Assembly: GCA_051530055.1 (NCBI GenBank)
Contig: CM121342.1
Span: 9,005,480 to 9,069,479, forward strand
DNA from: Neoechinorhynchus agilis
Taxonomy: Eukaryota; Animalia; Acanthocephala
Direction of reading: 5' to 3'
Length of the DNA: 64,000 bases
Part shown: piece after piece, positions 8,655 through 62,408 of the stretch
Numbering within the stretch: the stretch's first letter is position 1
Layout of the letters: each line of letters starts with the position of its first letter
Notes under the pieces: model-generated
Seen by the model: the letters and a program-made list of their open reading frames with translations, nothing else
Told to the model about the DNA's origin: nothing
The model's database searches: none
Position numbers and translations under genes: made by a program

Positions 8655-8735
8655 TCTTCTCCCGGTAAAGAATTTTTTATTAAAAACGTTTCGAACATCG
8701 TTGTTTTCATCATCGGCATTTTAGTTAATGGTAAA
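8655..8735 (-). repeat. Dispersed hammerhead-like / Penelope-terminus motif, degenerate core
   Basis: Minus strand reads CCGATGA-T-GAAAAC..GTTC-GAAAC-GTTTTT-AATAAA..TTCTTTACCGGG; related copies at 30.7, 33.7, 39.2 and 59.1 kb. Confidence 0.6.
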
Positions 8736-8893
8736 GACATAAACAAGAATTCTAGTTTAAATGTTCTTTATTGATTTGCTAATTTTATCTGGCTTTCGAC
8801 TTTTATCGTTCATAAGAGTTAGTTTTGATCCTAATTCCTATGATTATTATTTTTCTAAAATCTACAATGTTTTGTAGGAAATACAGATTTATT

Positions 8894-8907
8894 GTATCCA
8901 TGGCAAC
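8894..8907. promoter_or_regulatory. X-box GTATCCATGGCAAC upstream of the Tctex-1-like gene
   Basis: RFX consensus match 37 bp before ATG 8944. Confidence 0.65.
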
Positions 8908-8943
8908 ACGTTTTTAACAAAATTCAAATTACGATCTTTCCAA

Positions 8944-9291
8944 ATGGGTATTAGCGACGATCAGTTGGAAAAGATCGTAAAGCGAAACATACGTGAGGTC
9001 ATTGGACCAAATTATAAATTCGATCCAATGACGGTACAGGAAACTCAAGATATTTTATCCAATCGCATTTTAAAGCATTTAAGTTCGCACTCCGATTACA
9101 AAAACAATTACGTCATCAAATACGGGATAACGATTGTTATGGATCGTCTTGAAAATCCTTGTCTACGAAGACTGAGTAGCTACATTAACACGGACGACAA
9201 CTGTAAAGTGAAAAAGTATAATTTTTCTTGGAAAAACGCTCATTTGAGCGCGGATGTTATAATTTGTGCGATTGAATGTTCAGTCGTATAA
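8944..9291 (+). CDS. Divergent Tctex-1 family dynein light chain
   Basis: 115 aa, intronless; pattern QLEKIVKRNIREVIG..KY.ITIVM..SWKNAHLSADVIICAI parallels Tctex-1 (VSNIVKEAIESAIG..KYIVTCVIM..RWENKTMYCIVSAF). Confidence 0.65.
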   Translation: MGISDDQLEKIVKRNIREVIGPNYKFDPMTVQETQDILSNRILKHLSSHSDYKNNYVIKYGITIVMDRLENPCLRRLSSYINTDDNCKVKKYNFSWKNAHLSADVIICAIECSVV

Positions 9292-9452
9292 AAATTTAAT
9301 TTTCGATGATGGAATTTCGGGGAGTTATTATTATGCAAATGATGCTGTCGTGCTTCGTAAAAAAAAGAAAACAAGCAAAAACTTACAAGCAAATCCACTT
9401 ATATTGAAATTTTATACCACAGGTAATTTAAGTGGGAATAAAACACTTTAAC

Positions 9453-9506
9453 AATATCCAATACAAACAAACTGCTGAAGAAGATCCTAGTTTGGATCGA
9501 AATATT
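9453..9506 (+). ncRNA. Candidate type III hammerhead ribozyme
   Basis: AATAT-C(9458)-CA..TG-CTGAAGA-A-GATCC/TAGTTT/GGATC-GAAA-TATT: intact core, 5-bp stems II and III, AUC triplet; stem I is only about 2 bp. Confidence 0.5.
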
Positions 9507-12475
9507 CAACCGCCAGCGGACAACGACTCAGAGAACTTTCAAGAATCTGAGGCTTAGACTTCCCGTCGAAACATCATCGTTCCATCATAAGTAAAAAATC
9601 TAAACACGGAGGCAGATCTCTTCCCTTCGCCCACTTCGCCCTCGATTTCGACTCGCTGTACTGTATGCGATCGCGTCATAGGCGTGACGATAAGTGGGCT
9701 CATTCGAAAACATGGCCCGGTACGATCCCGAATCCCTGGATCTTCCCTTCCACCAGTGTTGGACAAACCTTTTATCATCGACAGTCTCGAAACTCAAAAT
9801 GTGATGAAGCGCCTCTTACAATATCTTCCAAAAACGGTCTTGAAGAGGATTCCAAAAGGAGCCAGGAATGGCTGCTGTGAAATGGTCTTCTAAGCTGCTG
9901 GCAAACTGCCTATCTGAACCGACGAATACAAACTATTCACGTTTATTCGCCTTTCCAAAATTGGTTCTGAGTACTAGCCGTGACCCCGAGTCCAACCTCA
10001 CGACCACCATCAAGCAGCGGATAACCAATTTTGATCGACTTTTTGAGGAGGCTGTGACGAAAAGTTACAATAATCAAACTCTTGCCAAGAAACGTCCAGA
10101 AGGACCCTTCGGCCGTCCTTATAATTTGAGTAATAGGATTTCTGCCAAATTGGCAGACGCAGATGTCCGTGGAGCGGTCAGGTTACTCAGTTCCACAGCT
10201 ACGTTTGCGGACAACGACCGCTCGACACTGGAGGCGTTGAGAAGTAAGCATCCTTCAGCTTTGCCACCGATTTTGCCCTGGATACCGGAAAAGTCGCGTC
10301 AATCGACGAGGTGCACGCGGGAGGAACTTAGATGTGCTGTATCCTCGTTCCCCAATGGGTCGGGACATGGACCCGACGGACTTCGACCCCAACACATCAA
10401 GGATATGTTGGGATTTGGAACGGGAGTGATGGGAATGAAGCTCGAAACCGAACTCGTTAAATCATTAATGGACCTCTCCCACTTGAAGCAACGAATTTTC
10501 TATTCTCGGCATCTCTTTGCGCCCTTTCCAAATCAAACGGAGATATTCGTCCGATAGCTGTGGGCTGCACTCTAAGACGTTTGGCAGGGAAGATTTTGTG
10601 TAAGCGACTGAGCGAAAGTGTAGGTGGGCAACTCAGACCTTTTCAGTTGGGCTGCTGTACTCCATGTGGAGCAGAAGCGATAGTGCGCTCCACACGTACC
10701 TATATCGACGCCTCTGCCACCCCAACGGTCGTCCTAAAAGTCGATTTTTCGAACGCCTTTAATACAGTCGATCGAACAGCCTTGCTAAGTACCATTGCTC
10801 GAGAATTACCTGAAGCCTATGAATACTTTGTGAAGGCGTATGGTTCTAAGACACCTCTACATTTCAACGAGCACGCCATTTGGTCCGAAACAGGTCTGCA
10901 ACAAGGCGATCCTCTCGGCCCCATAGGATTTTCCTTAACAACCAATGGAATATATCGTAAGCTCAAGGCAAGTTTGAACGTCTGGTACTTGGATGACGCG
11001 ACATTGGGCGGTGACCCAAAGACGGTTCTAGAAGACCTGCAATCCCCGCTTGTTTCTGCTGCGGAATTGGGCTCACGTGTCAACCCCGCGAAGTGTGAAG
11101 TATTGCCACTAAATATTTCACATTCTCGCATGGCGGATACAATGCAGTCCTTCGAATCCTTTGCCCCAGGAATCCGATTAATCAACCGGCAAAGCTTCAC
11201 TCTTCTCGGCAGTTGCGTCCTGGATGCGAACATAGATCGCGAGATTGAAGAAGAGCTCCCTAAACTGGATCTTTTGTGCTCCCGCGTTCAAGAATTGAAT
11301 GCACACGAAGCTCTTTTCTTGGTGAGAAACTGCCTATACATACCGAAGCTTATGTTCAAGATGAGAGCAGCCCCGTACTTCCGACACACCAAACGTCTCC
11401 TTGACTTAGATGATTTGATGAAAAAGCATCTTGAGAAGGTAACGAACTGCGCCATCACTGATGAAGCTTGGCAACAAGCTGCCCTTCCGATCAAATACGG
11501 AGGTTTAGGCTTACGAAGTGTGGCTGGTTTGGCCCTTCCGGCATTCGTATCCTCGATGCACAAGACGGAGGAATTACAGGGGGAAATTCTTTTAAACAGA
11601 ATGCCGAAGCCATGCAAACTATTGAAACAGGGAGTCACATCATGGCTCTCGCAGACCGGTCTGCAACAAGCTCCAACCAACGCGCACGAACAATCTGCTT
11701 GGGATAAACCCTTAATCCTGACGGCTCACAACAAACTAAAAGGCCAGATGGACGAGATGTCTCAAGCTAGACTTGTGGCCAGTTCCTCGAAGGAGTCAGG
11801 CGCATGGTTGAACGTTTTGCCAATTGGTACTTTGGGAACTTTGCTGGACGACGAGACAGTTCGAATAGCCGTCGCTCTACGTTTAGGACTTCAAACCTGT
11901 GCCCCACACCAGTGCCGATGTGGAATAAAAGTTGACGTGCTTGGGAGACATGGACTCTACTGCAAGAGATCGAGCGGTCGTTTCCCAAGGCACGCAGAGC
12001 TCTGAACTCGATCCACGTTCCAACCATCCTGGAGCCCAATCACCTCTGTCGCTCGGATGGTAAGCGTCCCGACGGTATAACCGTTTTCCCTTGGAAAGAA
12101 GGGAAGAGTCTAATTTGGGACGCAACATGCGTGGACTCACTCGCCATGTCCAACCGGCAAGATGCTTTAGCGGAGACGGGAGGAGCAGCGAGTGCCGCCG
12201 AAAGGAGGAAAGCGGAGAAATACAGTGAGCTGAAACAAAATTACATTTTCCTTCCTTTCGGCGTGGAGACACAAGGGGCGCTGGGATCTTCGGCACGAAG
12301 CTTTTGTGCCGAACTCGGACGACGACTTGCAGCACAAACAGGGGAGCGACGCGAGAGGATTTTCCTGATCCAAAGAATAAGCCTCGCAATCCAACGAGGA
12401 AATGCGGTTAGCGTCCGGGGGACGATTTAATCATTTTTTAATTGCACAAAACACGCTTGAATAAAAATATTCTTT
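9500..12475 (+). mobile_element. Near-full-length CRE-like RLE non-LTR retrotransposon with frameshifts
   Basis: N-terminal CTVC..VT..G.IRKHGP, VLKRIPKGAR, GPDGLRP, RT (LKVDFSNAFN, QGDPLGP, YLDD), zinc knuckle CRCG..GRHGLYC..RH, RLE (KRPDG..WDATCVD..AERRKAEKY..FGVET..QRGNA); AATAAA at about 12459. Confidence 0.92.
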
Positions 12476-12794: not shown

Positions 12795-15105
12795 ATTATA
12801 AAGTACAAAACGTGCAATCACAACCGTCAGCAAAATTGGAGCTTCTCTCCTTCCTCGGCTCTGCGAGTGTGTCCACACACGTGGCGTCCCAGAGAAGGCA
12901 TTTGCCCTCCCGCCAAAGAAAGACCGGAATTTTGTCTGGTCGACGACCGTCTAGTCGACGAAGATGGGTAGGTTCCAAGATGTTGAGGAAGTTCGCCGTT
13001 CTCAACAACCGAGAAATTACGCTATTGATCTTAGAATGGCGTGAGAACCTTCCTCCTGACTTTCGGCAAACGAGACCGTGTCGCTCGACAGCGATGGGGC
13101 GCACTTATCAGGAGACCAAGTCATAAGGACACTGCGATCCTCGTTACCTCATCAGTGAGAAGAGTTCCACAGATGCAAGAGGAACAGCCTCCAATCACCC
13201 CCCGATTATCGTGTCGAAACTGCCAACAATCTAGCTCGGACGACCCCATCGCGATAACCTGAAAGTAGAGAGCTGTGAGCTCTCGCGACGAGAGGTCTGT
13301 CCCAGATCGACTGTCTGAGACCATTCACGGGAACATGGTTAGCGCCTGTCTGCTTGCACCATTCTTCAACTGCCACCACAAAGTCTTGGTCTAGACAAAA
13401 CTTTTCCCTCAAGGCAAGGTCTACTAGCGCCCGAATGCCCAACGCCTCATATGTGAGCTGGGCATTTAAAGTACGCTCGAGACAAGTCCTTACCTTGTTG
13501 TCGAGCTTAGCCAATCCTTCCTTATGTTTGATAACAATTTGGGGATAAAGAGTGCGTTCTTTATCAGAAATAACACTTCGTGAGCCGAGAGAGCGCTCAC
13601 TCTATCGTACAGCAACGAACGTTTCGGTATTATACGGCCGATCTCAGCTTCCACATTTGAATCAAAGACGCAACTACCCAGGAGGCTGAGTTGCTCTGGA
13701 GTAACGAGTTTCAGACCTGGAGTTACGGCCTCAAACCCATACATTAGCTCCTTGACTTTGGCGGCGTATTCGATATTTAATACTAGGAGCTCACACTTTC
13801 CAGCATTAAGCTCAACGCCCAATCTCGCAGTCTCCCTAATCAGCGTCTCCAAATCGCGCAGTACAACGGAGGGGTCACCTCCGAGTGTAGCATCATCCAC
13901 GTACCAAGCATTGAAGCTGGAATGAAAAGAGTGCGCTATTGGATTTACTGTTAGGGAGAATGCGATTGGACCGAGAGGATCTCATTGCTGCACTCCTCTT
14001 TCGGACCAAATGAGGTGGTCTTGGAAAAGCAAAGGAGTCGCGGTCCCGTAGGCACTGAGAAAATACTGGAAGGCTTCTGGCGCGTGACCCCTAATTGCGC
14101 GAAACATGCTGTATATGAACACTTTTTATTAATTATGAAGAACGATCTACACACTTGCCAGCATCTATCTTTGCTAAACGGTGTATGGATGACGAATGTT
14201 GAAGGCAAAGGAGGTGGGACTTGTTTTTGAAGGGATGTTAATGTGCGATCGGAGGCTTTGTACAGGAGATGACCGTTTGGGGGTCTTTCCTTGTTCTCCG
14301 ATTATGAAGGAAAGATTGGGCTTGGGGGAAGAAAGATTTTTGGTAGGGGGTGGTAGAAGCGAGGGGGGATGGAAAAGGTTGGGGTTACGGGTGTTTACGA
14401 AGGAAGAGTATACAGAGATGGGGGAAGAAAATTGTGGAGGAGGTTGAAGTAGACGGAGGGCGTTTTTGGAGAAAATGGAGTGGAGGTGGGCGTCGAGGGG
14501 ATTGAGTGAAGCCCCGCATATTCTAGCTGCTCTCTTGTGGAAGGTCTCTAGGGAATGGAGAGCATTGACGGAGAGGGCGAGAAAAGTGGGAAAAGCGTAT
14601 GTAAGGATAGGAAGGATGGTAGAGATAAAAGTGGGCAAGGTGTTTAAGGGATACGCCGAGACGCCGGAGGAGTTTGTGGAGGTAAAGACGAGGGTTTGTT
14701 TTAGAGAATGTAAATGAAATGTGGGCATCCCATCTAAGGTTTTCTTTGAAAGTCAGGCACAGTATTCGGAGAGCAGGGGAGCGTTGGATGGGGAGAGGGA
14801 GAGGCGCGGGGATAAGATTGCGTTTGGAAATGTGGGGGACAAGGTCCATTGAGAGAGTAAAAGGCGTTTTGAAAATCACACTTAAGAATAACACAGGGCT
14901 CTGAACTCCTCGTAGTAAGGTTTGGGAGCGCGTGGAAAATAGCTTCCGCCCGCAGGATGTGCAGCAGCCCAGTTGCACTGGGCGAAGTTGCTGCCCGTTT
15001 TTCTCTGTGATACGTTTACAGAGAATTTTTTTGCAAGTTGGCGTACCGTCGAAGATACGGCGATGGGACGAATCCCACCTTCTTTTTTTGTGATTGCACA
15101 TAATG
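12795..15105 (-). mobile_element. Second CRE-like element, decayed and interrupted by a CR1/L2-like fragment
   Basis: GQQLRPVQLGCC and LKCDFQNAF at 15.1-14.85 kb; RT resumes at about 14.1 kb (APEAF, Q*DPLGP, YVDDATLGG); RLE part WREGKCLLWDATCVDTLA at about 12.9 kb. Confidence 0.85.
14170..14850 (-). mobile_element. 5'-truncated CR1/L2-like LINE fragment nested in the CRE element
   Basis: Thumb motifs LRW.AHI...RLY.H.LLRRLG...ILPILTYA...LETFHKRAARI. Confidence 0.75.
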
Positions 15106-15129
15106 ATGCTCCAAAAAATAGGTCTTTTG

Positions 15130-17870
15130 CAACGGGATTCAGGTCCTATTGTAAGAACACCATTTTAAATTTTCTATTGCTGTCAAAAAGATAATTTTTT
15201 TGACGTTAGTTATCATTTCGCCAATAACACTTCCTATTAATCTTTGTGAAAAAGGAAGTAGAGGGAGCCTAGAAGTATAGAAGCATGAAAGGAATTGGGA
15301 TTGCAAGTGTTATGCTCTTGTTCAAAGGAGAGTAAAATGTTTCAAAAATTGTGGTTGTACGGCTGAGCGACGTTCTTATTAAGGTATTCGGTGAAAGGGG
15401 GAAAATCAACTGCTCAAATTTTAGAAGCTTTTCTATGTAACGTTATAAGGCGACGGATTCGTGATTGGGATAGGTTGCAATAGACGGAATAACCGTAGGT
15501 GTGGGAGGATGCGATATAAATAAACTTAAATGTGGACATCGGGCGAAGGGATTCCCAAGTGGCGGAGGCGTTTGAGGAGATAAATTTTAAAGGTATTTCG
15601 TTTTGAGGGAAAAATGCAATGTGCGAGTCCCATTTCGGATTTGATTGAAATTGGAGACCCGGAATTTTGAGTGTGATTTATGCAGAAATCTTTGATGTGT
15701 GTGATTTCGTTAGAGGTTAAGGAGAGGTGGGAGGGTGATTGAATGATGAGATCGTCGGCATATAAAAAAGTTTAAAGTGAGAGTAACGAGGTTTATGTTC
15801 GTTTACAAAAATATTAAAAAAAGTGGTGACAAGATTGCACCTTTGATGAGGGATAGAGTGGCCGAGAAGGTGCCAGTGGATCTGCAACGCGTTTAGGTCG
15901 AAGTAGGAACAGGCCTGGAGGAGCATTGAATGGTCTGCGGGGTCGAATGCTTTCGATAAATCAAGTTGAATGATACGATTGACGTGAGAGGGATTATTCT
16001 TAAGGTTACGTAGGAGCGTGTCATAAATGCAAAGTAGGGCATCGGTTGCAGAAAATTTGGATCGGAAACCGAATTGCATAGGCGATAATTTGTTGTTTAT
16101 AAGTTGAAGAAGGCGAGTTGTAAAACATTTTTCTACAATTTTTGAAGAGGACAGAATGGATATTGGACGGAATGATTTTCAGGTATGAAGAGAAATGCCA
16201 ATTGAAAAACGATTTATAATGTGGATGAGAGGGTCCATAAGTTCGGGTATATAATAGCATCATAATAACACGTTTCATTTTGATAAAGAAGATGAAGCAC
16301 ATACACTTGGGTTTTCGTGATCACCTGATTTTGGAGTGGATGACGGATCTGGCGAGGTGGATGAAGGATCCGGAATTTGGAGTGGATGACGGATCAGGAA
16401 TGTGGATGATGGATCCGGAGTGAATGATGGATCCAGAAGTAGATGTGGACGACGGATCCCGTGGATGATGGTCGGCGACAACCTGCAGCGAAGTGCCCAG
16501 TTTGGGATTTCGGATTGAAAGGACGAACATCGGGGTGATTTCTTGAGATGTTGTAGGACGTCATATGACGGAACTAAGGGGATTATTGGAGAGTTGACAG
16601 AAGTGTCAGTTGTGGGAGTGATAGTTTGGGTGGAGTCTAAGATGGGGCAATGGCTGTAAATTGAGTCAGGGCGGAGGTTCTGATTAATGGAATCTAGAAC
16701 CTGTTTTAATTCAGTGGAGGACAAATTAGGAATGGGATCCGTGTGGCGTAGACTAAGAGAGTCCTTGACGGCCCGCCACCATTTTGAGTCACCACCTGAA
16801 CGAATTTTAGAGGAAAGGAAGTTTTTGCGGGCGATAAGTATTTTGCTAGTTAGTGCCTTTTGTAAACGTAGAAAGCCCGGAGAGTTATTGCGGTGAGCGT
16901 TAGGAGCTTGCCTTTGAAGAAGTTTCTCCATGGTGGGCCGCGGTTGGAAATACTAATGAATTTCGTGGGTATTACCGAAGTTAGAGAATATTTTGTGATT
17001 TAAGTTATGGACCAAATGGCCAAGGAAAGGCCATTTATGTTGTCAGAATGGGATGTACGGATGTTAGAGTTGAATAATTTTATAAAATTGTGAATGTGAT
17101 GATCACGTTTATCCCGGACGAGTAAATGGGGAGATTTCATACGCTGAGGTGGGAGTAGAGGGAGTGATAAGGGCAGAGGAATGGTCAGAGTTTGCGGGGG
17201 GGAGTTTAGAGGCGGATGAGTAGGCGTCAATATTCGTGAACACTTTGTCGTGGTAAGCGTCAAAAAGTGTTGAAAAAGAGGAAATAGATTATTGAAGTTT
17301 TCTGCAATTAAGAAATGATGTGAATTTGTGGAGTTTATAAGCTCTATCATAGAGTCAAATTCGAGCAAGGAGGACTCAGGTCGAGAGGCAGGAGGGCGAC
17401 AGACGCCAGCAACGGCGAATTCTCTAAGGCCGTTTCTCAGAGGAACTAGGAAATGGACTGCGATGAATTCTAGATCGGGGTTTTGTAGGCCGTACGTAAA
17501 TTGAGACCCCCTCCTGGACGGTCCTCGCTACATGTATGGAAGGAAGAGTACCCGGGAAGAATGGCTGAATCGCTGTTGGAGGGGGTAAGCCATGTCGGCT
17601 TTTGAGGTAGATGAAATGAGTGAAATTTCATCTAGTTTAGGAAGGAGGCTACAGCGAGGAAGATGATTTTGGATTTCGGGAAATCAGGGGCGGAGGTGAG
17701 GGAGACTGTCGTTGCATTGTTCTTCGCGAGTGGTGGGTTAATTGAGCAATCGTTACGGGATGCCGACAAAGAACGATTGATTATCCCACAGAGAGAAGTC
17801 CGGGATAATTTCGTGATATCGGTATTGCAGAGCGCCTATGAGAAATGAAGAGTATGGTAGTGATTTTCGT
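15130..17870 (-). mobile_element. Decayed CR1/L2-like LINE (APE endonuclease plus RT)
   Basis: APE-like ILPGYSSF...DRPGGG at about 17.5 kb; RT QFGFRSKFSATDALL...LDLSKAFD at 16.08-15.95 kb; thumb remnants to about 15.2 kb; many stops. Confidence 0.8.
16330..16475 (+). repeat. GTGGATGAYGGATC-type minisatellite inside the CR1-like element
   Basis: About 6 imperfect 18-24 bp units containing GGATGA(C/T/A)GGATC. Confidence 0.8.
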
Positions 17871-18615
17871 TAGTACAAATGATGCTGTGGTTTTTCGTAA
17901 TAAATCGAAAAAATATTCAAATTTAATTTCCACCATGTCAAAAGTTATAATCATGAAGTTCGGTTTGAACCTCTAAATTTATTTGGGGTTTTCGCCGCTG
18001 ATCGCTATTGCCGTTTCAAAGTAAAGGAAATTAATGTCTAATTCTGCATGCATTTTTTGAAGAAAGTTGTTATTCGTAAATAGCCGTTTTGCCCTGTACG
18101 TTCCGGATAAACAAGAAAGCGAAAAGATGAAAGTGAAATTCATATTATTGGGCTTATCAGTTGTTAATCGATTAGAATTGGAGGAGATTATTTACTTAGG
18201 GATGGATGACAATCAAGTTTGTGGATAGAATTCCGCATCGTGTCTATTGAACTGATCGTGGTTATCGGTAGAATACTGTGGCATTTAATCAAATGAAATC
18301 GAAGATCGCAAAGAAGTGTCCGTTGATGACAATGTCGAAGGAAAATGTTTTTATCATGAGCACTTGTTAATAGTGCTTTAATTCTAAAAAACTGATTATC
18401 AATTCTTTGTAAAGTTTTCCCGGGAAACGCCAAATGCGCTAAAATACGAGTTTCTGCAAGCCTTTAATCGATAAAAATATAATAGGGCCTCAAGATTTCA
18501 AAGAAAATGCGATCACGAGATGAAAATATGTGTAAAAGAAATGTATCTCGTGATCATTTCAACCGATTTTTCGCCTTTAAAGGTCATTTTTAGCACCACA
18601 ATGCAACATTTGACT

Positions 18616-19735: not shown

Positions 19736-20050
19736 TAACAAACCTTTTTAGATAAAGTTTATTCAGATTTAGCAAATAAGCTAAAATAGCGACATTGCGA
19801 CCAAGTATTTTATGTCCTCTTAAATTCGTAAATTTTCCCTTTAACAAAGAGGAAGAACCGAAGCTTTATTTAAATCCAAGTTTTTTCATATATACAAATG
19901 CATTGGATTATTATCTCTGTAACGAAGGGAAAATATAGTTTCTTTTTCTTAGTTTTGCCACCCCGCCCGGATTTAAATTCACTAATTTATTTCACTTGTC
20001 GAATAATTCCGACATTTTCCCGACGTTTTTTCAGGTAGAAGCTTTGTTTT

Positions 20051-20820
20051 TGCTTAAACGACCAAATTCCTTTTAGGAGAAAAAGAAAAGCTTTTATTTT
20101 TCACCAAAAACAATGATAAAATCTTGGGAAAATGTCGAAATTATGAAACAAGTGAAATATCGGGGAAATAAATCAGTGAATTTAAATCCCGGAGTGGTAA
20201 AACTAAGAAAAAGAAGGTTTTTCAAGGTTTGTCCAGGTTGGAACTTTGGTTTATGCTTAAACGAGCAAATTAGCCTAAGGAGAAAAAGAAAAGCTTTTAT
20301 TTTTCTCCGAAAAAAATGATAAAATCTTGGGAAAACGTCGGAATTATCCAACAAGTGAAATATCGGGGAATAACTAAGTAAATTTAAATCCCCGGAGTGT
20401 CAAAACTAAGAAAAAGAAGGTTTTTTGAAGGTTTGTCCAGGTTGGAACTTTGGTTTATGCTTAAACGAGCAAATTAGTCTTAGGAGAAAAAGAAAAGATT
20501 TTATTTTCCACCGAAAAAAATGATAAAATCTTGGGAAAACGTCGGAATTATCCGAGAAGTGAAATATCGGGGAAATAAATCAGTGAATTTAAATCCCGGA
20601 GTGGTAAAACTAAGAAAAAGAAGGTTTTTTCAAGGTTTGTCCAGGTTGGAACTTTGGTTTATGCTTAAACGAGCAAATTAGCCTTAGGAGAAAAAGAAAA
20701 GATTTTATTTTTCACCGAAAACAATGAGAAAAAATTGAGAAAATGTCTGAGTTACCCGGCAAGTGAAATATCGGGGAAATAACTAAGTAAATTTGAATCC
20801 CCGGAGTGTCAAAACTTAGA
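20051..20820 (+). repeat. Tandem array, about 204-bp unit, about 3.7 copies, preceded by an inverted partial unit at about 19940-20030
   Basis: TGCTTAAACGA recurs at 20051, 20254, 20458 and 20662. Confidence 0.95.
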
Positions 20821-21384
20821 ATGATAAAGACGTATACAAATAATGAATCACAGCGGTAATCATTCTAAATAATGAATTTTGTAAATTAAAAAAACACACG
20901 ATATCTCGATTTGCCTAATACAGAATCCGCACGAATACTCTAAAAGGTCTCACAAACGTTAGAAGAGTATTGAAGACCGATTTTCGATTCTTAAATAAAA
21001 ATTCTAACCTATTATAATTAATAGTAATTCGCTGAAAACATCCCGATCAGGAATTGTGGTCGAATAAAACGTCGCCCAACTTCGACTCCTGATATTTTGG
21101 CATTTTCCACGTATTATCAAGGCAAACAATCATTGGATTCTGAACGGTTTAGTCAATGATTTGGTTAACCATTTCTGAATTCGCTCTTTGTAAAAAATTG
21201 GTTGTCAAACAAGCCGTCATTATTGAAAAGTAAAGATTTGAGTTCAATGTGTGAATTTTCAACGATTTCCACGAAAAACGAAACATTTTCTATAGATATG
21301 GAATGTTTATTTCGCAATTATTCCACTGTGTTGTTGTTCAATATTTTAAACTGCTCCGTTGAGTTCGTCTAAGAAGACCGAATG

Positions 21385-22402: not shown

Positions 22403-25535
<3,133 letters not shown>

Positions 25536-26129
25536 ACGCATTGATTCAGAAGGTTTGAATTTCAATTCTCTACTTTAAATAGAAATATCAAAGTTTCGTT
25601 GATTCCGCATTCTGCGTAGATTGCTATATGTTCGCTTAGTGAAATTTCGAACGTGGGTTATTACTGATCCGTTACGCTTTACCGTGTTTTTTGCAAATAC
25701 AAATGTATGACTTGCTTCTATTCTGTGATTTATGAACAAATACCAAGTATAGTCTAAGACCAAATACATCGAGTAAAAAGGCAAAATGAGCATTATCGAT
25801 TCCTATGAAATCCTTGCTGACTGTTCACTTGCTTTTTGAACATAATAATATCTACTGAAGTCTATAAAACATTTTAAAAGCCAATGTCGAATGAGATTTT
25901 TTCATTCTGAGCATAAACCAATCACATCGAACAAAAACAAATAAATGACCCTTAAATGGGGAAGTAAAAGAAATTCGACGTTTGAATTTTTACTGCAATG
26001 GAACGAATAATTCGTTTTTCTTCGAAAATTGCCTCGCGCTATGCAAATATCTGAAATATCGACAGATTCGAAACGTTTTGCTCGGTCTTAAAAAATAGAA
26101 GATATCTGACGATAAAAGAATGCCATCTC

Positions 26130-27520: not shown

Positions 27521-27521
27521 C

Positions 27522-27650
27522 ATGCTTGTTTGTGGCGTAAAAATTAAAAGAATTTATTAATTCCGATATTTCGGCACGATAAAGACACAAGATTATACCG
27601 AAATATCGGAATTAATAAATTCTTTTAATTTTTACGCCACAAACAAGCAT
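27522..27650. repeat. Perfect 53-bp inverted repeat with a 23-bp spacer at the Penelope 5' junction
   Basis: 27522-27574 is the exact reverse complement of 27598-27650; the arm also recurs at about 26131-26173. Confidence 0.95.
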
Positions 27651-27890
27651 AAATAAGTATACAATAAGTATCGAAAGCGAGTATAAAAATCGCTCCGATT
27701 TTTTAATTTATGCTTTAATGTAGCAATACCGCATACGAATGTAAACATTACATTGTGTTTGTTTCTTTTATTTAAACTCGGAAAATAAAGTTTAAATTAG
27801 AAATAATTAACCATTTAGAAATAATTAACCATTAGCTTCTTTTTCGTGCTTTGTATTCATCCACTGACCTTTGTGTTATTTCAGTTGATT

Positions 27891-46993: not shown

Positions 46994-47515
46994 TTTGATG
47001 CAAAAACGGAGTTTAAATAACGGACTGGATAAAACGGCACCCCGGAAAACGTTATATAACAAATTTGTCAAGATGATAGTCGAGAAAGTGACCTTAACTA
47101 TATTCCCAAGTCCTTCAGGAGGGCTAGTGCCGACCCTCCCAAGGCCGTTTCCACACCGAAGGGGACAAAATGGTAATTTCGGATTAGCTCCCTGTATTTT
47201 GAGCATTCCCGATCCTCTGCAGCCGTCGCCGCTCCTCCTGGACCTTTTTTCGAGTGGCTGATGTTGGAGTTTGCCAACGTGTCCACACACGTTGCATCCC
47301 ACAACAAACATTTTCCCTCCCGCCAAGGACTACATTCCCTAAAGTTTTCTAATTGCTGTATTTATAATGTAAGAAACATGAACAAGGGTTCCTTACAGCC
47401 ACAACAAAACTAGTGAATGTTATCGAATATTTTATTAATAATAATCAATTACAATCCTTAAATTTAAGAATTGAAATATCAAAGTCAATAGTTTCGGGAT
47501 AAATATACTCAGAAA
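46994..47515 (-). repeat. 522-bp direct repeat, copy 1, containing a CRE-like RLE fragment
   Basis: Matches 49901-50422 (two substitutions seen); encodes PWREGKCLLWDATCVDTLA..KYREL..FGVET. Confidence 0.95.
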
Positions 47516-47573
47516 CCCATTGGACGGTTTTGAGAATCTCTTCTTCGAAATAATTCCTTGGCAAGCTTTTTAG

Positions 47574-49082
47574 TCAGTCGATCGATGTCTTTTTATGAGC
47601 CTCTGAAACTGGGCATGTTAAAAGCTCCGTAATCTTCAATCCTATTGTCCCGATCATGTCCATTAGTGGAGCATTCGACTCGTTATTTGCCATCTCGAAC
47701 AGAATATTGATTAGTCCGGATTCTATTACTTCATTAGGATTCATCTTGCACGATAACATCTCGGATAAAACGCTATTGGTCAGTTCAACGCTCTTAGCCC
47801 TTCGCTGATTGTCTAATAGATGAAGAAGTCTTTGTTGAAGAGCCGAGAATTCTGAGCGCTTTGACTGAATATTCGTGCTGTCGATGATTGAATGCCTATT
47901 TGATTTATTATCACCGGGCCCCTTTTCTTCATCCGTTCTTTGCCTTTTTAACAAAGTTTCCGTTTTGTTAGGCGCATTATTCTTTGATCTTTTAATCTGA
48001 AATTTTTCCTTAATCTTGATTGCAACTCGGTTCATTATTTTAAAATACCGAGTATTCTCATCGTTTTCAAGCATTGCGCTCAAGAGATCTATCAGTCTGG
48101 CTTTTCGTACTTTGTGCAGACTAACTTTTTCTTTTAGAATATCTTCAAAAATATTCTTTGCCCGAGCGCCATTTATGATTTTGTAACTGGAGTCCAGGCT
48201 GTTCATCAACCGTCGACGGAGAATAAGGCCCTCTGACGGTTTAGCGATCGTTGATTTTGAGACTCCGGTGCTTGTATCCATTAACTCATTAAAACTTTGA
48301 TCTTGAACACCGCTTACTTTTCTAGAAATTGGACGTTGATGTTCTTCATTCGTCCGTTTCTTGGTCTCAGCATCGGTCCAATCTTGTTTTATATCCTCGG
48401 TAAGAACGGTTTTCTCATTTTCGAAAACCGATTTTAGTTTAGAAGCCACTTGTTTGATGAGATGTTCTAGAATTGCATTGTCCTCATTTTGTTTTATCCG
48501 ATATAAAATCCGTATTAGTTTCGATTCTCGGATTTCAGCCATTGTCGGATTCATTTGAAGAACTTCATGCAGGATACCGGATACCGATTTCGTGTTTTCG
48601 ACTTTGAAATTTCCGTCTAATGCCATTCTAATCTTTCTGTAGAGCCCACAAAGATGGTTTTCGGACCTTTTAGGAGAAGGATTCTCTTTGTTGGCTACCT
48701 TCCTTTTTTCCTTTTCTTTATTTGTATCTTCAAGTTGTCGTTTCCGAGTTGATGGCGCAACAATCACAGTTGGATATTTCTTGTATTTTGGTATCCTGCA
48801 GTGGTTTGCCTCCAATATTCCTTTAAATTTGATCCTTAATTTTCGGAGGAACCAGTTTATGCTTGAGGACTCCTCATTGCTTGCCATTTGCTCGACCAAT
48901 TGAAACATCTCCCAGTTTAGAATATCATAAACTGTAACCGGTCGAATTAATAATTCTCGTAAATTTCGTTTCGCTACCGCCTGAATGACCGTCATGTAAT
49001 CTTCATCCAAATTTTCTCGAAGGTCACAGCATATCTCTTCGATTGACTTGTCCTTGATATTGGCTAATCGTTTGCTCGGCAT
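47574..49082 (-). CDS. Intronless 502-aa protein with four tandem LEDGF-IBD/TFIIS-N-like helical domains
   Basis: About 75-aa modules, e.g. LYRKIRMALDGNF...ILHEVLQMNPTMAEIRESKLIRILYRI...IKQVASKLKSVF, repeated four times with basic linkers. Confidence 0.6.
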   Translation of the reverse strand: MPSKRLANIKDKSIEEICCDLRENLDEDYMTVIQAVAKRNLRELLIRPVTVYDILNWEMFQLVEQMASNEESSSINWFLRKLRIKFKGILEANHCRIPKYKKYPTVIVAPSTRKRQLEDTNKEKEKRKVANKENPSPKRSENHLCGLYRKIRMALDGNFKVENTKSVSGILHEVLQMNPTMAEIRESKLIRILYRIKQNEDNAILEHLIKQVASKLKSVFENEKTVLTEDIKQDWTDAETKKRTNEEHQRPISRKVSGVQDQSFNELMDTSTGVSKSTIAKPSEGLILRRRLMNSLDSSYKIINGARAKNIFEDILKEKVSLHKVRKARLIDLLSAMLENDENTRYFKIMNRVAIKIKEKFQIKRSKNNAPNKTETLLKRQRTDEEKGPGDNKSNRHSIIDSTNIQSKRSEFSALQQRLLHLLDNQRRAKSVELTNSVLSEMLSCKMNPNEVIESGLINILFEMANNESNAPLMDMIGTIGLKITELLTCPVSEAHKKTSID

Positions 49083-49900: not shown

Positions 49901-50422
49901 TTTGATGCAAAAACGGAGTTTAAATAACGGACTGGATAAAACGGCACCCCGGAAAACGTTATATAACAAATTTGTCAAGATGATAGTCGAGAAAGTGACC
50001 TTAACTATATTCCCAAGTCCTTCAGGAGGGCTAGTGCCGACCCTCCCAAGGCCGTTTCCACACCGAAGAAGACAAAATGGTAATTTCGGATTAGCTCCCT
50101 GTATTTTGAGCATTCCCGATCCTCTGCAGCCGTCGCCGCTCCTCCTGGACCTTTTTTCGAGTGGCTGATGTTGGAGTTTGCCAACGTGTCCACACACGTT
50201 GCATCCCACAACAAACATTTTCCCTCCCGCCAAGGACTACATTCCCTAAAGTTTTCTAATTGCTGTATTTATAATGTAAGAAACATGAACAAGGGTTCCT
50301 TACAGCCACAACAAAACTAGTGAATGTTATCGAATATTTTATTAATAATAATCAATTACAATCCTTAAATTTAAGAATTGAAATATCAAAGTCAATAGTT
50401 TCGGGATAAATATACTCAGAAA
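49901..50422 (-). repeat. 522-bp direct repeat, copy 2
   Basis: Offset 2907 bp from copy 1; abuts a half-copy of the 52.8 kb palindrome at about 49867-49900. Confidence 0.95.
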
Positions 50423-51178
50423 TCCAAAAAACAGATATTGATTTTTTGTCCCAGACTTTTTCTCGATTTTACAGATTCTTCATTTCCAATATGAAAGTGT
50501 CTGAACTATCAGATTGCTGCCTAAAAAATGTTTCTTTACGAATATGAACATCGGCGGTAAGCATGATGGTCGCTCCATGAACAAGATAAAGTCGGTCAAG
50601 TTGTTCAACTATTTAAAAAATTGCTAATATTTTCATTGCACAGGACAACTGTTGTGGTTCTTAGCGAAATGGAAACCTACCTCAGTGTTTAAAAGTTGCC
50701 AACATTCCTTTGATCAAAAAATATCGCAAAGTTCTGTCTTTTTAGGTTTAAAGTATGAAGATTTAAATGTGTGTGAAAAATTAAGCTAGAAATAACGGGT
50801 TTGTTCAAACAAAAATGAAATCTAACCAAAAGTACGTTCTTCACCATCAACATAAACATTCACAATTCCAATAATAATTTTTGCCTTCCTGTATCCATTT
50901 CAAAAATACAAACTTACTAACTAATAAATCTATTAAGGAAGTACAAAGAGCTTGAGTTTTCGAAAATCAGTTTAAAATTTCAATAAAACATTTTACTTCA
51001 TGGAAATTTGCATTATGTTTTTTAATATTAAATACACGCAATAACTCGTGTTCGATTAGCTGGACAATTTCTGCAAGATTTAGGACACGATTTATCTTAA
51101 CAAGAAGAGGCTAATGTAATATATTTGCTAAACTAAAGGAAACATACTATGAAGGATCTCTAAACTGTCATCAGTTCA

Positions 51179-56904: not shown

Positions 56905-58765
56905 ATGTTTTATTAAATCCGATTATATTCGGAGCCACAATCTTGAACGCCTTTTTATCAAGGTTACTTTATCAATATATCAAGCCGATGTTTTCATCCA
57001 ATCAAAATGGGAATTAGCAATGAATTTAACTCTAAATACATTTATTTGCATTTATGGCGGTGAACAATTGAAGGAATTTTCGTTAAATCGGATTGTTTTC
57101 GGAACCACAATCTTGAACGCTTTTTTATCAAGGTTTCTTTTAGTAATATATCAAGCCGACGTTTTCGATCGGATAAAAATAAGAAAAATTTATATGTTTT
57201 GATCAACTGTGAAGAAAGGAACGCTGAATTTAACTCTAAATACATTCTTGGGTTTATTGCATTGAAAAATTGAGGGAATTTTATTAAATCCGATCGTTTT
57301 CGGAACCACAATCTTGAACACTTTTTTATCAAGGTTACTTTTATTAATATATCAAGCCGATGTTTTCGATCGGATAAAAATTGGAATTAGCACTGAATTT
57401 AACTCTAAATACATTTTTGGGTTTATTGCATTGAAAAATTGAAGCAAATTTTATTAAATCCGATTGTTTCCGAAAACACAATCTTGAACAATTTTTTATC
57501 AAGGTAACTTTTATTAATATATCAAGCCGATGTTTTCGATCGGATAAAGATAAGAAAAATGTATATGTTTAGATCAACTGTGAACAAAGGAACGCTGAAT
57601 TTAACTCCAAATATATTTTTGGGTTTATTGCATTGAAAAATTGAAGGAATTTTATTAAATCCTATCGTTTTCGGAACCACAATCTTGAACACTTTTTTAT
57701 CAAGGTTTCTTTTATTAATATATCAAGCCGACGTTTTCGATCGGATAAAAATAAGAAAAATTTATATGTTTAGATCAACTGTGAAGAAAGGAACGTTGAA
57801 TTTAATTCTAAATACATTTTTGGGTTTATTGCATTGAAAAATTGAAGGAATTTTATTAAATCGGATTGTTTCCGGAACCACAATTTTGAACGCTTTTTTA
57901 TCAAGGTTTCTTTTATTAATATATCAAGCCGATGTTTTCGATCGGATAAAAATTGGAATTAGCACTGAATTTAACTCCAAATATATTTTTGGGTTTATTG
58001 CATTGAAAAATTGAAGGAATTTTATTAAATTCGATTGTTTCCGAAAACACAATCTTGAACACTTTTCTATCAAGGTAACTTTTATTAATATATCAAGCCG
58101 ATGTTTTCGATCGGATAAAGATAAGAAAAATGTATATGTTTAGATCAACTGTGAACAAAGGAACGCTGAATTTAACTCCAAATATATTTTTGGGTTTATT
58201 GCATTGAAAAATTGAAGGAATTTTCGTTAAATCCGATTGTTTTCGGAACCACAATTTTGAACGCTTTTTTATCAAGGTTTCTTTTATTAATATCTCTAAC
58301 CGACGTTTTTCATCCAATCAAAATTAGAATTAACACTGAATTTAACTCTAAATGCATTTATTTGCATTTATGGCGGTGAACAATTGTAGGTATATTCGTT
58401 AAATCCGATTGTTTTCGGAACCACAATTTTGAACGCTTTTTTATCAAGGTTTCTTTTATTAATATATCAAGCCGACGTTTTCGATCGGATAAAAATAAGA
58501 AAAATTTATATGTTTAGATCAACTGTGAACAAAGGAACGCTGAATTTAACTCCAAATACATTTTTGGGTTTATTGCATTGAAAAATTGTAGGTGTATTCG
58601 TTAAATCCGATTGTTTTCGGAACCTCAATCTTGAACGCCTTTTTATCAAGGTTTCTTTTATTAATATATCAAGCCGGTGTTTTCGATCGGATAAAAATAA
58701 GAAAAATTTATGTTTAGATCAACTGTGAAGAAAGGAACGCTGAATTTAACTCTAAATACATTTGT
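56905..58765 (+). repeat. Tandem array with mixed 170-bp and 201-bp units, about 10 copies
   Basis: T(C/T)TTGAAC landmark at about 56941, 57111, 57312, 57482, 57683, 57884, 58053, 58255, 58427 and 58629; the unit core matches the solo copy at 33345-33420. Confidence 0.97.
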
Positions 58766-59104
58766 CTCTAAGCTTCGAAATTAGAAAGCATTCTAATAGT
58801 TTTCTATGACAAGGTAGAAATAGAATCGGAATTTTTGTGGCCTAAATTTACAACAATGGATTGGTTTCTAGCGTTCTCTTGAGCTTGCAAGCGTGCATTG
58901 TAAAGCCACCAAAAAGTGGCTTTTATGGACCGTTTCCACATACAGCAAAATTGCTGCCTTGACAACCAGAAAATTCTTATATGCCCATTTTTCTGTCGAA
59001 TGCCAACTGTTAAGTTCTAGAAAATTCACAACGACAACATTTAGTGGTTTATATCATTGCAATGAATTTCCTAGCATTTTGAACTAACTTTTTTTATTAG
59101 TCCT

Positions 59105-59170
59105 CACCCGGTAAAGAATTTTTATTAAAGACGTTTCGAACATTGTCAGAGGTTCATCATGAGTTCGAAA
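59105..59170 (-). repeat. Dispersed degenerate hammerhead-like motif
   Basis: CTCATGA-T-GAAC..GTTC-GAAACGTCTTTAATAAAAATTCTTTACCGGG. Confidence 0.6.
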
Positions 59171-59346
59171 ATCTTAAAAGGTTTGCAAAACGTCTTTAGG
59201 ACTTTTATATATTTTTTATTAAAAAATCGAAATCGCCGCCACTTATTAAGAGACAACAATATTCTTACCATTTTCAAGCTAATTTTTTCCTTTTTGATTG
59301 CGATCATTTTATTCTTAAGAGTCAATTATGTTTGAGAAGTTGTTCA

Positions 59347-59508
59347 TGATAAGAAAAATAGATATTGATTTATTAATTCTTAATATTTCATCCGTTTCGT
59401 CGGACTTCTTCAGGTTATTTAAGTGTATTATACTCACAACACCTGAAGAAGTCCAACTAAACGGACGAAATATTAAGAATTAATAAATCAGTCTCTATTT
59501 TTCTTATC
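59347..59508. repeat. Inverted repeat made of two divergent hammerhead cores
   Basis: Plus CTGAAGA-A-GTCC/AACTAAAC/GGAC-GAAA-TATT (59443-59474); minus CTGAAGA-A-GTCC/GACGAAAC/GGAT-GAAA-TATT; arms about 68 bp. Confidence 0.85.
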
Positions 59509-60508
59509 ACAGAAACAACATTTTATCTCGGTATAGTTCGATTTCAAAAAAGAAAGCCTTTTGACGCCTTTAATCGATTTGGTAAGTAAAACGCTTTTTC
59601 CAAAAAGCCGTCATTTCTCTCCTGGCACGTACATTCCATTCAACACATTGAAATTGTTCTGAGGACTCTTTTCATTCTCAATTCATCGCATGGCCAAACT
59701 TCCGTGCGTGTGCTTATATTCGCAATGAAAAGCATATTTTCAAATTTTCATCAGCTTAAATTACTTCCTTTAAATCATGCATCTAAGATTCCATCAACCG
59801 TAAGCGTCCACATCTTCGATCTTAGATCACAATAAAAAAACTATCAGTAGAACCATGGGAATCATTGTTTTAATCTAAGGAATCGGAAATTCAAAATGTT
59901 TTGCCTCGAGGTCTCATTGGAGGGGGCTCTAATAATAAGACGAAATTATCTTAACCAAAATTGAAGGACGCAATTGATTAACGGATAAATGAACAATGAC
60001 GTCACCATCTTAAAATACACGAATCTTTTTCAGTCTTTAAAAATAATACCATTATAAACGACCCGAACCTCCATGTTTCTCGGTCAGGGTCAGCAATCAT
60101 TCGAGACGCCGTCACTAAAGTTCGCTTTTATGTGTTCAATGAACCAAAACAGTGTCTTCTTCCGATTGCTTTCCATAATATCACTAAAGCATCTTTTTAA
60201 CGTTAAGCTTTTGTAAATGTTGATTTTTTCGCATTTTGTTCCGATCGTTCGAATACTCACACTTCTTTTTTACTCTTCTTATAATACCAAATCGCCTTAA
60301 GCCGACTGTCGAAAATAAACGTTCAATCGATAAAGCCACCGAGTTCATTCTGTTCACACAAATTTCCCCAATATGATAATCAAAAAATACTGCATCAATG
60401 CAACCAACTATGTCGAGTTATACAATCATTTTAACAATTGAACATTCTCATGCATTTGGAATAACACCAAAATAACCCTAAACGTCGGTGTTCCAACTCC
60501 ACATCTTT

Positions 60509-62408
60509 AACTCCCAGATTTCGGTGTTCAGTGTATTCCTAAGTTCATTTATCGGTATTTCGATTAACTTCATTGCTCATGAACATTCCGAAAAAAACCC
60601 GATATTTCAATCTCAAACTCTCTTATTATTTAAAATATTTATATCGTCTACTAATAATTATCTATTTCCTACTTAAATCTGCCCTTCCGACACGTCTTTA
60701 ACTCCCAGATTTCGGTGTTCAATGTATTCCTAAGTTCATTTATCGGTATTTCGATAACTTATTGCTCGTGAACATTCCGAAAAAACCCCCCCACCAACCC
60801 CAACAGTTCATTTATCGTATTTCGATAACTTCATTGCTCTGAACACCGAAAACCCGATATTTCAATCTCAAACTCTCTTATTATTTAAAATATTTCTATC
60901 GTCTACTAATAATTATCTATTTCCTACTTAATCTGCCCTTCCGCACTCTTTAACTCCCAGATTTCGGTGTTCAATGTATTCCTAAGTTCATTTATCGGTA
61001 TTTCGATAACTTCATTGCTCTGAACATTCCGAAAAACCCGATATTTCAATCTCAAACTCTCTTATTATTTAAAATATTTCTATCGTCTACTAATAATTAT
61101 CTATTTCCTACTTAAATCTGCCCTTCCGCACTCTTTAACTCCCAGATTTCGGTGTTCAATGTATTCCTAAGTTCATTTATCGGTATTTCGATGAACTTCA
61201 TTGCTCGTGAACATTCCGAAAAAAACCCGATATTTCAATCTCAAACTCTCTTATTATTTAAAATATTTCTATCGTCTACTAATAATTATCTATTTCCTAC
61301 TTAAATCTGCCCTTCCGACACGTCTTTAACTCCCAGATTTCGGTGTTCAATGTATTCCTAAGTTCATTTATCGGTATTTCGATGAACTTCATTGCTCGTG
61401 AACATTCCGAAAAAAACCCGATATTTCAATCTCAAACTCTCTTATTATTTAAAATATTTCTATCGTCTACTAATAATTATCTATTTCCTACTTAAATCTG
61501 CCCTTCCGACACGTCTTTAACTCCCAGATTTCGGTGTTCAATGTATTCCTAAGTTCATTTATCGGTATTTCGATGAACTTCATTGCTCGTGAACATTCCG
61601 AAAAGAACCCGATATTTCAATCTCAAACTCTCTTATTATTTAAAATATTTCTATCGTCTACTAATAATTATCTATTTCCTACTTAAATCTGCCCTTCCGA
61701 CACGTCTTTAACTCCCAGATTTCGGTGTTCAATGTATTCCTAAGTTCATTTATCGGTATTTCGATGAACTTCATTGCTCGTGAACATTCCGAAAAAAACC
61801 CGATATTTCAATCTCAAACTCTCTTATTATTTAAAATATTTCTATCGTCTACTAATAATTATCTATTTCCTACTTAAATCTGCCCTTCCGACACGTCTTT
61901 AACTCCCAGATTTCGGTGTTCAATGTATTCCTAAGTTCATTTATCGGTATTTCGATGAACTTCATTGCTCGTGAACATTCCGAAAAAAACCCGATATTTC
62001 AATCTCAAACTCTCTTATTATTTAAAATATTTCTATCGTCTACTAATAATTATCTATTTCCTACTTAAATCTGCCCTTCCGACACGTCTTTAACTCCCAG
62101 ATTTCGGTGTTCAATGTATTCCTAAGTTCATTTATCGGTATTTCGATGAACTTCATTGCTCGTGAACATTCCGAAAAAAACCCGATATTTCAATCTCAAA
62201 CTCTCTTATTATTTAAAATATTTCTATCGTCTACTAATAATTATCTATTTCCTACTTAAATCTGCCCTTCCGACACGTCTTTAACTCCCAGATTTCGGTG
62301 TTCAATGTATTCCTAAGTTCATTTATCGGTATTTCGATGAACTTCATTGCTCGTGAACATTCCGAAAAAAACCCGATATTTCAATCTCAAACTCTCTTAT
62401 TATTTAAA
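60509..62408 (+). repeat. Tandem array, 191-bp unit, about 10 copies
   Basis: AACTCCCAG at 60509, 60700, 60952, 61137, 61328, 61519, 61710, 61901, 62092 and 62283; right-hand units look essentially identical. Confidence 0.98.

Follow-up and report, generated by a model that had tools for sequence, protein, structure and literature searches.

The 64,000-nt stretch of the Neoechinorhynchus agilis genome analyzed here (assembly GCA_051530055.1, contig CM121342.1, positions 9,005,480 to 9,069,479 of the forward strand; hereafter the window) contains short dispersed and tandemly repeated motifs resembling minimal hammerhead ribozymes. These motifs are most probably insertion relics of hammerhead-bearing Penelope-like elements (PLEs), together with short non-coding derivatives copied by the PLE machinery, and two satellite arrays would be tandem amplifications of such end-pieces. 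Each copy would correspond to a 3'-terminal piece consisting of a minimal type-I hammerhead and an A/T-rich tail of 35-110 nt that includes a word similar to AATAAA. In the proposed core, CUGANGA and a single unpaired base precede helix II (4-6 bp, with a closing G-C pair), which is followed by GAAA and a palindromic AUAU or ACGU replacing the helix III hairpin, with U or C at the cleavage site.

Hammerhead cores and motif families

The initial annotation had reported one motif recurring as solo or paired copies at about 8.7, 9.5, 26.2, 27.6, 33.3-33.7, 38.7, 39.2, 45.5, 59.1, and 59.4 kb. Copies were located by self-BLAST, seed BLAST, nhmmer, and covariance models (CMs), paired copies by an inverted-repeat search, and arrays were delimited by Tandem Repeats Finder (TRF). 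A real repeat copy was present at every one of these sites. The loose pattern CTGANGA-N4-30-CGAAA matched nine times in the AT-rich window (32-49% GC), when compared to 1.87 +/- 1.26 matches expected in shuffles. A strict descriptor, requiring CUGANGA, no more than one unpaired base, helix II with 4 bp or more and a loop of 3-14 nt, and GAAA right after the stem, detected four intact cores at 9475 (+), 38669 (-), 59413 (-), and 59443 (+), with an expectation of 0.15 +/- 0.40 and a maximum of 2 in 200 dinucleotide shuffles. Both catalytic boxes and helix II were intact in these four copies only. Three further copies (8.7, 59.1, and 39.2 kb) had one core-box substitution each in the alignment, and approximately 10 others were truncated on the 5' side, internally deleted, or devoid of helix II.

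The first box was CUGAAGA in all four intact cores, and helix II was followed in each by GAAAUAUU, corresponding to A15.1-U-A-U16.1 and then U17. A single unpaired base preceded helix II in the four descriptor matches, and also in the rows of family A and of the array at 30 kb in alignment A7, in which the copies were fitted to the CM. Helix II was closed by G-C in three of the four intact cores, the other being the minus arm at 59.4 kb with G-U at 10.1-11.1; this pair was G-C in 10 of the 12 rows of A7 and G-U in one. The sequence after GAAA was UAU-U in families C, D, and E, UAU-C in family B, and CGU-C/U in family A, all palindromic with a non-G at position 17 and forming no stable helix III.

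Pairing in A7 reached 89.7% of the cells, compared with 65.7% in shuffles and 10-61% with slid partners, values which lean towards structure as the alignment had been fitted to the model. Changes on both sides were seen in seven of the eight pairs. As for helix II, 91.7% of the cells were paired and four of the five pairs had changed on both sides, while the slid controls collapsed. This helix was readable straight from the DNA as GAUCC/GGAUC, GUCC/GGAC, GUAAAC/GUUUAC, GAAC/GUUC, and GAAUC/GAUUC, and single-strand folding recovered it in three intact copies (z -1.6 to -2.7).

CM R1 was trained on four solo copies only (alignment A5) and scanned with filters off, with reporting to E<=10; the second CM is denoted R2. 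R1 recovered family D (38631-38674), which lay outside the training set, with 28.1 bits (E 1.2e-4), as well as six units of the 30-kb array (E 2e-4 to 0.03) and two arms of family C (E 0.04 and 0.3). Five weak matches (E 0.03-7) were also detected at 2423-2453 (+), 18339-18365 (-), 25850-25878 (+), 36519-36549 (-), and 40313-40337 (+). They contain both box-like words without helix II, in which they resemble the copies at 26.18 and 33.6 kb, and may represent either additional decayed copies or chance matches.

The copies fell into at least five families (A-E) with one common architecture. No significant alignment was found between families outside the ribozyme core; for example, a hidden Markov model (HMM) of the family B tail matched family C only with E 2.9. 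As A-E aligned mutually in the core alone, a single family for all copies was ruled out, and the copies were regarded as several families sharing an architecture. The recurrence originally reported was thus real, whereas its attribution to one motif family was not, and most copies lacked an intact core.

Family A comprised the copies at 8.7 (-) and 59.1 kb (-) and the pairs 39.15 (-)/39.2 (+), 33.6 (-)/33.7 (+), and 45.45 (-)/45.55 kb (+). Its register, obtained from the alignment with the 30-kb array and the CM fit, was the box, a U bulge, GAAC-loop-GUUC, and GAAAC-GU-C/U. AUGAUGA had been considered as the first box of this family and was dropped once the array alignment and A7 gave the register. 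The boxes differ by one base: CCGAUGA (U4 changed) in the solo copy at 8640-8721 (minus strand; CM R1/R2 at 8680-8721, A-tail HMM at 8640-8695 with E 4e-14, A7), CUCAUGA (G5 changed) in the solo copy at 59087-59168 (minus strand; CM, nhmmer E 3e-13), and CUUAUGA at 39.2 kb. As these changes do not sit at one and the same position, the core was presumably intact in the source element and then decayed independently in each copy. The tail had a short form at 8.7 and 59.1 kb and a long form at 33.7, 39.2, and 45.45 kb, which may correspond to the optional tail extension of PLEs.

Family B, with members at 26.2 (-), 27.47 (+), 27.55 (-), 27.6 (+), and 33.4 kb (-), retained only CC-GAAAUAUC-GGAAUUAAUAAAUUC plus downstream sequence, i.e. 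the GAAA box and the tail. The copy at 26116-26181 (minus strand; nhmmer E 2e-17) still has CUGAUG at 26.18 kb, lacks helix II, and continues with GAAAUAUC and a tail of ~33 nt. Another copy with the GAAA box and tail at 27463-27524 (plus strand; nhmmer E 2e-16, inverted-repeat search) lies tail to tail with the twin at 27517-27655, and the solo copy at 33320-33411 (minus strand; BLAST, nhmmer E 6.5e-13) was designated B2.

The intact cores were carried by families C (59.4 kb), D (38.6 kb), and E (9.5 kb). The family E core at 9470-9511 (plus strand; descriptor) is composed of CUGAAGA, a 1-nt bulge, a 5-bp helix II, and GAAAUAUU, and gave a folding z of -2.67. Family C was multi-copy in sequencing data of the organism, with a contig depth of 53-225 versus 2-5 for unique flanks. 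The matching contigs ran on into unrelated sequence, and the similarity was bounded at ~59347-59354 and 59415-59420. These data were four runs of one study, the kind of which was only guessed; the read-length contigs and the depth of 2-5 in unique flanks resemble low-coverage DNA.

Head-to-head twins and the proposed link to Penelope-like elements

Six pairs of copies were arranged head to head with spacers of 1-150 nt, at 27.55/27.6, 33.6/33.7, 38.67/38.78, 39.15/39.2, 45.45/45.55, and 59.41/59.44 kb, and the tails pointed outward in every pair. The family B twin (27517-27655; inverted-repeat search, nhmmer) has arms at 27517-27574 (-) and 27598-27655 (+) that are 98% complementary and separated by a 23-nt spacer. 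In the family A twin at 33578-33757 (sequence, BLAST, nhmmer), the minus arm (box at 33646) had lost helix II and the plus arm was truncated at the GAAAC box and had a long tail. In that at 39112-39287 (nhmmer E 4e-8 and 1.5e-11, inverted-repeat search, A7), the minus arm 39112-39179 was decayed and the plus arm 39205-39287 had the CUUAUGA box (G5 changed). Both arms of the family A twin at 45431-45593 (BLAST, nhmmer E 9e-13) were damaged, the minus arm being truncated or mutated at the GAAAC box and the plus arm showing CUGAUGA followed by an internal deletion. The family D twin (38560-38828; descriptor, CM R1, inverted-repeat search) combined an intact hammerhead with a 6-bp helix II in the minus arm (38631-38674) and a plus arm (38777-38828) truncated downstream of the ribozyme. 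The catalytic boxes were intact in both arms of the family C twin (59347-59509; descriptor, inverted-repeat search, CM, contig depth), the minus arm of which has the G-U pair mentioned above. A weak mir-305-like Rfam match at 59392-59464 was attributed to this twin hairpin. A seventh head-to-head layout was seen at the array at 20 kb. The arms started only a few bases upstream of CUGANGA at the junctions 39.18/39.21 and 33.65 kb, and so did family C in other contigs (59415-59420).

Solo copies and twins would have arisen from strong 5' truncation and from PLE integration laying an inverted 5'-truncated copy beside the main copy. PLE insertions are known for high 5' truncation, an inverted 5'-truncated copy, a 30- to 40-bp tail, and hammerheads near their 3' ends (Craig et al. 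2021, PMC8557442), and PLE reverse transcription is initiated at an internal point not far downstream from the ribozyme (Frangieh et al. 2024, PMC11167929). The window shares with this architecture the 5' truncation, partial tandems, adjoining inverted copies, the optional tail, and a hammerhead close to the 3' end, but most insertions here are only 70-180 nt long, with little beyond the ribozyme and tail. By analogy with the literature, the ribozyme of the parent element may function as a dimer and cleave read-through or tandem transcripts. Hammerhead-bearing PLEs have been catalogued in another acanthocephalan (PMC8557442).

A remnant of a GIY-YIG endonuclease, a putative PLE open reading frame (ORF) fragment, was identified at 26540-26707 on the minus strand (Pfam PF01541, E 5.2e-5, 23.9 bits versus a cut-off of 22.6). 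In the Atlas feature search with this ORF, 46 of 60 matches agreed with GIY-YIG, and Atlas GIY-YIG clusters scored 0.94. The remnant lies ~350 nt upstream of the family B copy at 26.13-26.18 kb on the same strand, which is the putative 3' end of a gutted PLE, and a second family B copy in the same orientation (27533-27574) 1.4 kb further up points to a frame resembling pseudo-long terminal repeats (pLTRs) around the gutted body. The minimal-hammerhead traits, the copy downstream of the GIY-YIG remnant, and the head-to-head twins support the earlier view of the motifs as Penelope-type ends.

The PLE reverse transcriptase (RT) was not found in the window. The sole RT ORF in the window, 10560-12005 (+), forms together with the ORF 9868-10557 a frameshifted long interspersed nuclear element (LINE) of the R2/CRE/NeSL type at 9868-12005 (+). 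This assignment came from the motifs of its relatives, proteins of 700-800 aa that carry CCHC and PD...D/E.K-type (restriction-like) nuclease motifs and no GIY-YIG domain, on the basis of which a Penelope RT was ruled out. No relative of the RT ORF was found in the PDB by sequence.

Several observations weigh against the assignment of the motifs to PLEs. The only PLE coding remnant in the window is 55 aa long, barely above the Pfam cut-off, and only putatively of the PLE-specific kind of GIY-YIG; the sole copy near it itself lacks helix II. Families A, C, D, and E have no physical link to any PLE ORF in the window, and the hammerhead at 9475 is located ~360 nt upstream of the LINE ORF, i.e. 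beside a non-PLE element. A hammerhead as a conserved 5' part of the LINE was rejected, as three relatives in other organisms (L001-L003) showed no upstream match by CM or Rfam; the position was therefore tentatively read as a juxtaposition. Helix I was merely 2-3 bp in all copies; the three modelled pairs were 86.5% paired in A7, but mostly as A-U in A/T-rich flanks. The Rfam scan of the window detected no hammerhead family at the gathering threshold or at E<=10, a silence expected from motifs without a helix III hairpin. Finally, the clustering of twin-arm starts just 5' of the ribozyme is not explained by simple random truncation. One possibility is a preferred stop or template-switch site of the reverse transcriptase.

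Satellite arrays and their proposed derivation from the end-pieces

The initial annotation had placed degenerate versions of the motif in four arrays, at 20, 30, 57-58, and 60-62 kb, and had suggested that several satellites may be amplified, mostly inactivated Penelope termini. Similarity of the arrays to the solo copies was evaluated by Smith-Waterman (SW) z-scores against dinucleotide-shuffled controls, and the B-tail HMM for the satellite test was built from solo copies only.

The array at 30203-30740 (plus strand; TRF, CM R1, A7) consists of hammerhead units starting at 30279, 30352, 30404, 30456, 30530, 30581, and 30655 (spacing of 51-74 nt), with higher-order periods of 125 and 177 bp in TRF. 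The units have CUGAYGA, a U bulge, and a 5-bp helix II (GAAUC-loop-GAUUC), and the GAAA box reads GCAGAAC in all of them, with two extra bases and one substitution in the invariant G12-A13 region. The last unit continues into a family A tail (30692-30735; A-tail HMM E 8e-7), and the comparison with the solo copies gave SW z=9. The shared core change, the terminal family A tail, and this similarity indicate the derivation of the array from a family A ribozyme. Judging from its sequence, the array is a multiplied family A ribozyme with a single tail, apparently amplified after the change in the core.

The array at 56908-58763 (minus strand; TRF), which reached 58763 on BLAST extension, has a 170/201/371-bp organization with a family-B-type segment of ~90 nt, comprising the GAAA box and AATAAA tail, in each unit (BLAST E 1e-16 to 1e-10). 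Ten units matched the B-tail HMM (E 2e-6 to 0.07), the solo copy at 33320-33411 shared 76-86% identity with the units in stretches of 57-94 nt, and the array scored SW z=20 against the solo copies. The units gave no CM match at E<=10 and had no recognizable CUGANGA box or helix II, indicating that the GAAA box and tail were kept and the ribozyme was not. A variant core with U3-A8 (UUGAUAA) was considered in the 57-kb unit; the word was there, but no helix II could be drawn and the CM was silent. The similarity to the Penelope end at 26.15 kb noted previously was therefore confirmed as homology to the family B tail, not extending to a hammerhead core.

The 30-kb array would thus repeat the ribozyme itself and end in a family A tail, and the 57-58-kb array a 170-200-nt piece with a family B tail, both possibly amplified through unequal exchange at the DNA level or through template switching in the course of reverse transcription. 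The identical damage of the GAAA box in all 30-kb units and the coreless 57-kb units suggest that amplification proceeded without need for self-cleavage. Two stages thereby coexist in the window, with the ribozyme itself multiplied in one array and only the tail kept in the other, and the growth of both after damage or loss of the ribozyme argues that amplification here was independent of self-cleavage.

The other two arrays did not show such relationships. The 204-bp array at 20025-20821 (plus strand; TRF, 3.8 units) contains no hammerhead; it gave SW z=-0.8 against the solo copies, nhmmer E-values of 3.8-7.7, and no CM match at E<=10. It has only short words in common with family B, including the 10-mer GAAATATCGG. 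An inverted partial unit at 19929-20057 (minus strand; inverted-repeat search, alignment, BLAST) adjoins the 5' side of the array and gives it a PLE-like twin layout, in which both arms end within ~20 nt of one unit phase. From this architecture alone, the array is possibly a PLE-mobilized repeat. The 11-nt GAAATATCGGG is present in every unit of the array and missing in the inverted arm (19929-20057 versus 20480-20631), and one base pair of the hairpin TTGG...CCAA is changed on both sides between the inverted arm and the array.

The 60-62-kb array scored no better than shuffles (SW z=0.5; CM 10-11 bits, E 6-9). Its interpretation as a ribozyme relic was ruled out by the noise-level CM matches and by the candidate GAAA forming part of the loop on an 8-bp hairpin, an arrangement unlike that of a hammerhead. 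Folding of array units was no better than that of shuffles (z -0.41 and +0.81). In summary of the comparison with dinucleotide shuffles, the 30-kb and 57-58-kb arrays exceeded the controls, the former as a series of units with a damaged GAAA box (CM E 2e-4 to 0.03) and the latter without a core, and for these two the proposal of inactivated Penelope termini stood; the 60-62-kb array, and at the sequence level the 20-kb array, did not exceed them.

The 10-mer GAAATATCGG occurred 18 times at 5-6 independent loci (260, 20154-20765, 26170, 27572, 27600, and 60608-62382), compared with 0.18 expected, and was common to family B and two otherwise dissimilar arrays. A 22-nt stretch at 260 was also similar to the 60-kb unit. 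It may be conceived that the PLE machinery repeatedly seeds satellites here, with the GAAAUAUCGG mini-hairpin and A/T-rich tail as the retained module, a 3' recognition or initiation piece, instead of the ribozyme; the 20-kb and 60-62-kb arrays, sharing that 10-12-mer, would then also be PLE-mobilized, and the 51-74-nt units at 30 kb would rank as the smallest tandem hammerhead repeats so far reported. We consider this extension quite unlikely. Another satellite, of 320 bp at 41407-43735 (seven units, 93% alike), showed no relationship to the hammerhead families (SW z=-0.6; CM noise only).

Alternative explanations and relation to known systems

Tandem head-to-tail hammerhead units, such as those at 30 kb, might suggest an active retrozyme-like system in which the arrays are transcribed, self-cleave, circularize to monomers, and are reinserted by the PLE reverse transcriptase. 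The 57-kb unit (170-201 nt) falls inside the published retrozyme range of 170-400 nt (PMC7229834), and minimal hammerheads need a neighboring copy for dimers, which a tandem array supplies. However, the intact type-I hammerhead that each retrozyme unit should carry was absent in the 30-kb units, in every one of which the G12-A13 region is altered, and in the 57-, 20-, and 60-kb units, which gave no CM core at E<=10 or noise only. The 30-kb units are also far shorter than known retrozymes, the folding of array units was no better than that of shuffles, and none of the runs recorded as RNA contained the stretch at 56.9-62.4 kb, so that such activity appears highly improbable.

The chance recurrence, within an AT-rich genome, of short A/T-rich words (GAAAT, AATAAA, TGATGA) that share no common origin is an adequate account of the 60-62-kb array, including its candidate GAAA in the hairpin loop, and of the 20-kb array at the sequence level. 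On the evidence of the shuffles, E-values, and covariation, it was rejected for families A-E as well as for the arrays at 30 and 57 kb, and the recurrence of the 10-mer GAAATATCGG at independent loci also speaks against it; as an explanation of the motifs, chance is very unlikely. The carriers might instead be non-PLE elements, such as mini-elements, elements like short interspersed nuclear elements (SINEs), or the 5' end of the R2/CRE-type LINE at 9.9-12.0 kb, which only resemble PLE ends. The position of the 9475 hammerhead upstream of the LINE ORF and the similarity of family C in other contigs, bounded on both sides and suggestive of a conserved ~70-nt unit, are in line with such carriers. 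No tRNA-like gene was found anywhere in the window, by which a tRNA-headed carrier was rejected, the three LINE relatives from other organisms lacked the upstream motif, and the head-to-head layout and minimal-hammerhead traits are hallmarks of PLEs. Non-PLE carriers are therefore unlikely, and short ones would still depend on the PLE machinery.

The origin of the motifs from PLE ends agrees with the minimal hammerheads of PLEs published in 2014 (Cervera & de la Pena, PMC4209133), the traits of which are an extra base between 9 and 10.1, G10.1-C11.1, a palindromic 15.2-16.2, many heterogeneous families per genome, and opposite-strand pairs. The motifs in the window are alike in the CUGANGA and GAAA boxes, the bulge, G10.1-C11.1, the covarying helix II, the palindromic AUAU/ACGU in place of helix III, and the short helix I, and also in being heterogeneous, mostly solitary pieces from truncated elements with opposite-strand pairs 100-700 bp apart or closer. 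In contrast, helix II is 4-6 bp here versus 7-8 bp in the Schistosoma families, and for helix I only 2-3 pairs could be drawn, against ~4-5 bp expected. Most copies here are damaged or deleted in the core, and linkage to a PLE ORF was seen for one copy only, itself without helix II.

Non-LTR retrozymes of animals, coexisting with PLEs, were published in 2020 (Cervera & de la Pena, PMC7229834), and an origin of retrozymes from PLE pLTRs has been argued from Xenopus (Li, Clavereau & Pollet 2026, bioRxiv 10.64898/2026.07.22.740005). The arrays here likewise consist of tandem head-to-tail repeats carrying or derived from type-I hammerheads alongside PLEs, and their units share sequence with dispersed PLE-end copies, as in the Xenopus preprint. 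They differ from retrozymes in that the 30-kb units are 51-74 nt instead of ~170-400 nt with a damaged core, and the 57-kb units have the right length and no core. The newt hammerhead satellites and Sm-alpha of Schistosoma are also satellite or dispersed repeats with a type-I hammerhead in the unit, working best as a dimer, but their ribozymes are intact and cleavage has been shown experimentally, whereas the arrays here are decayed and not known to be active. As the PLE-pLTR origin of tandem hammerhead repeats has been proposed for other animals (PMC7229834; bioRxiv 10.64898/2026.07.22.740005), the "lineage-specific route" from Penelope ends to satellites inferred in the initial annotation was unwarranted. 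The window is a new acanthocephalan example of a known phenomenon, the link among PLE ends, retrozymes, and satellites having already been published. In this compact genome, many of the small inverted repeats and of the motifs with AATAAA can be traced to the 70-180-nt relics and twins, which in annotation should be masked as PLE-derived and not taken as new RNA genes.

The animal genes within the window are those for RFX, Sina, the prenyltransferase alpha subunit, and a leucine-rich repeat protein. Other repeats were also observed. A 526-bp direct repeat, 99.4% identical between 46994-47519 and 49901-50426, flanks an intronless 502-aa ORF at 47574-49082 with no Pfam match, and looks like LTR-type or duplication-type flanks. 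A 167-bp direct repeat, also 99.4% identical, occurs 1.7 kb apart at 31253-31419 and 32968-33134 and is followed by a second common piece of ~62 bp. The region 14000-18000 shows a strong skew of G over C (0.38-0.40) and includes a 46/63-bp minisatellite at 16330-16458.

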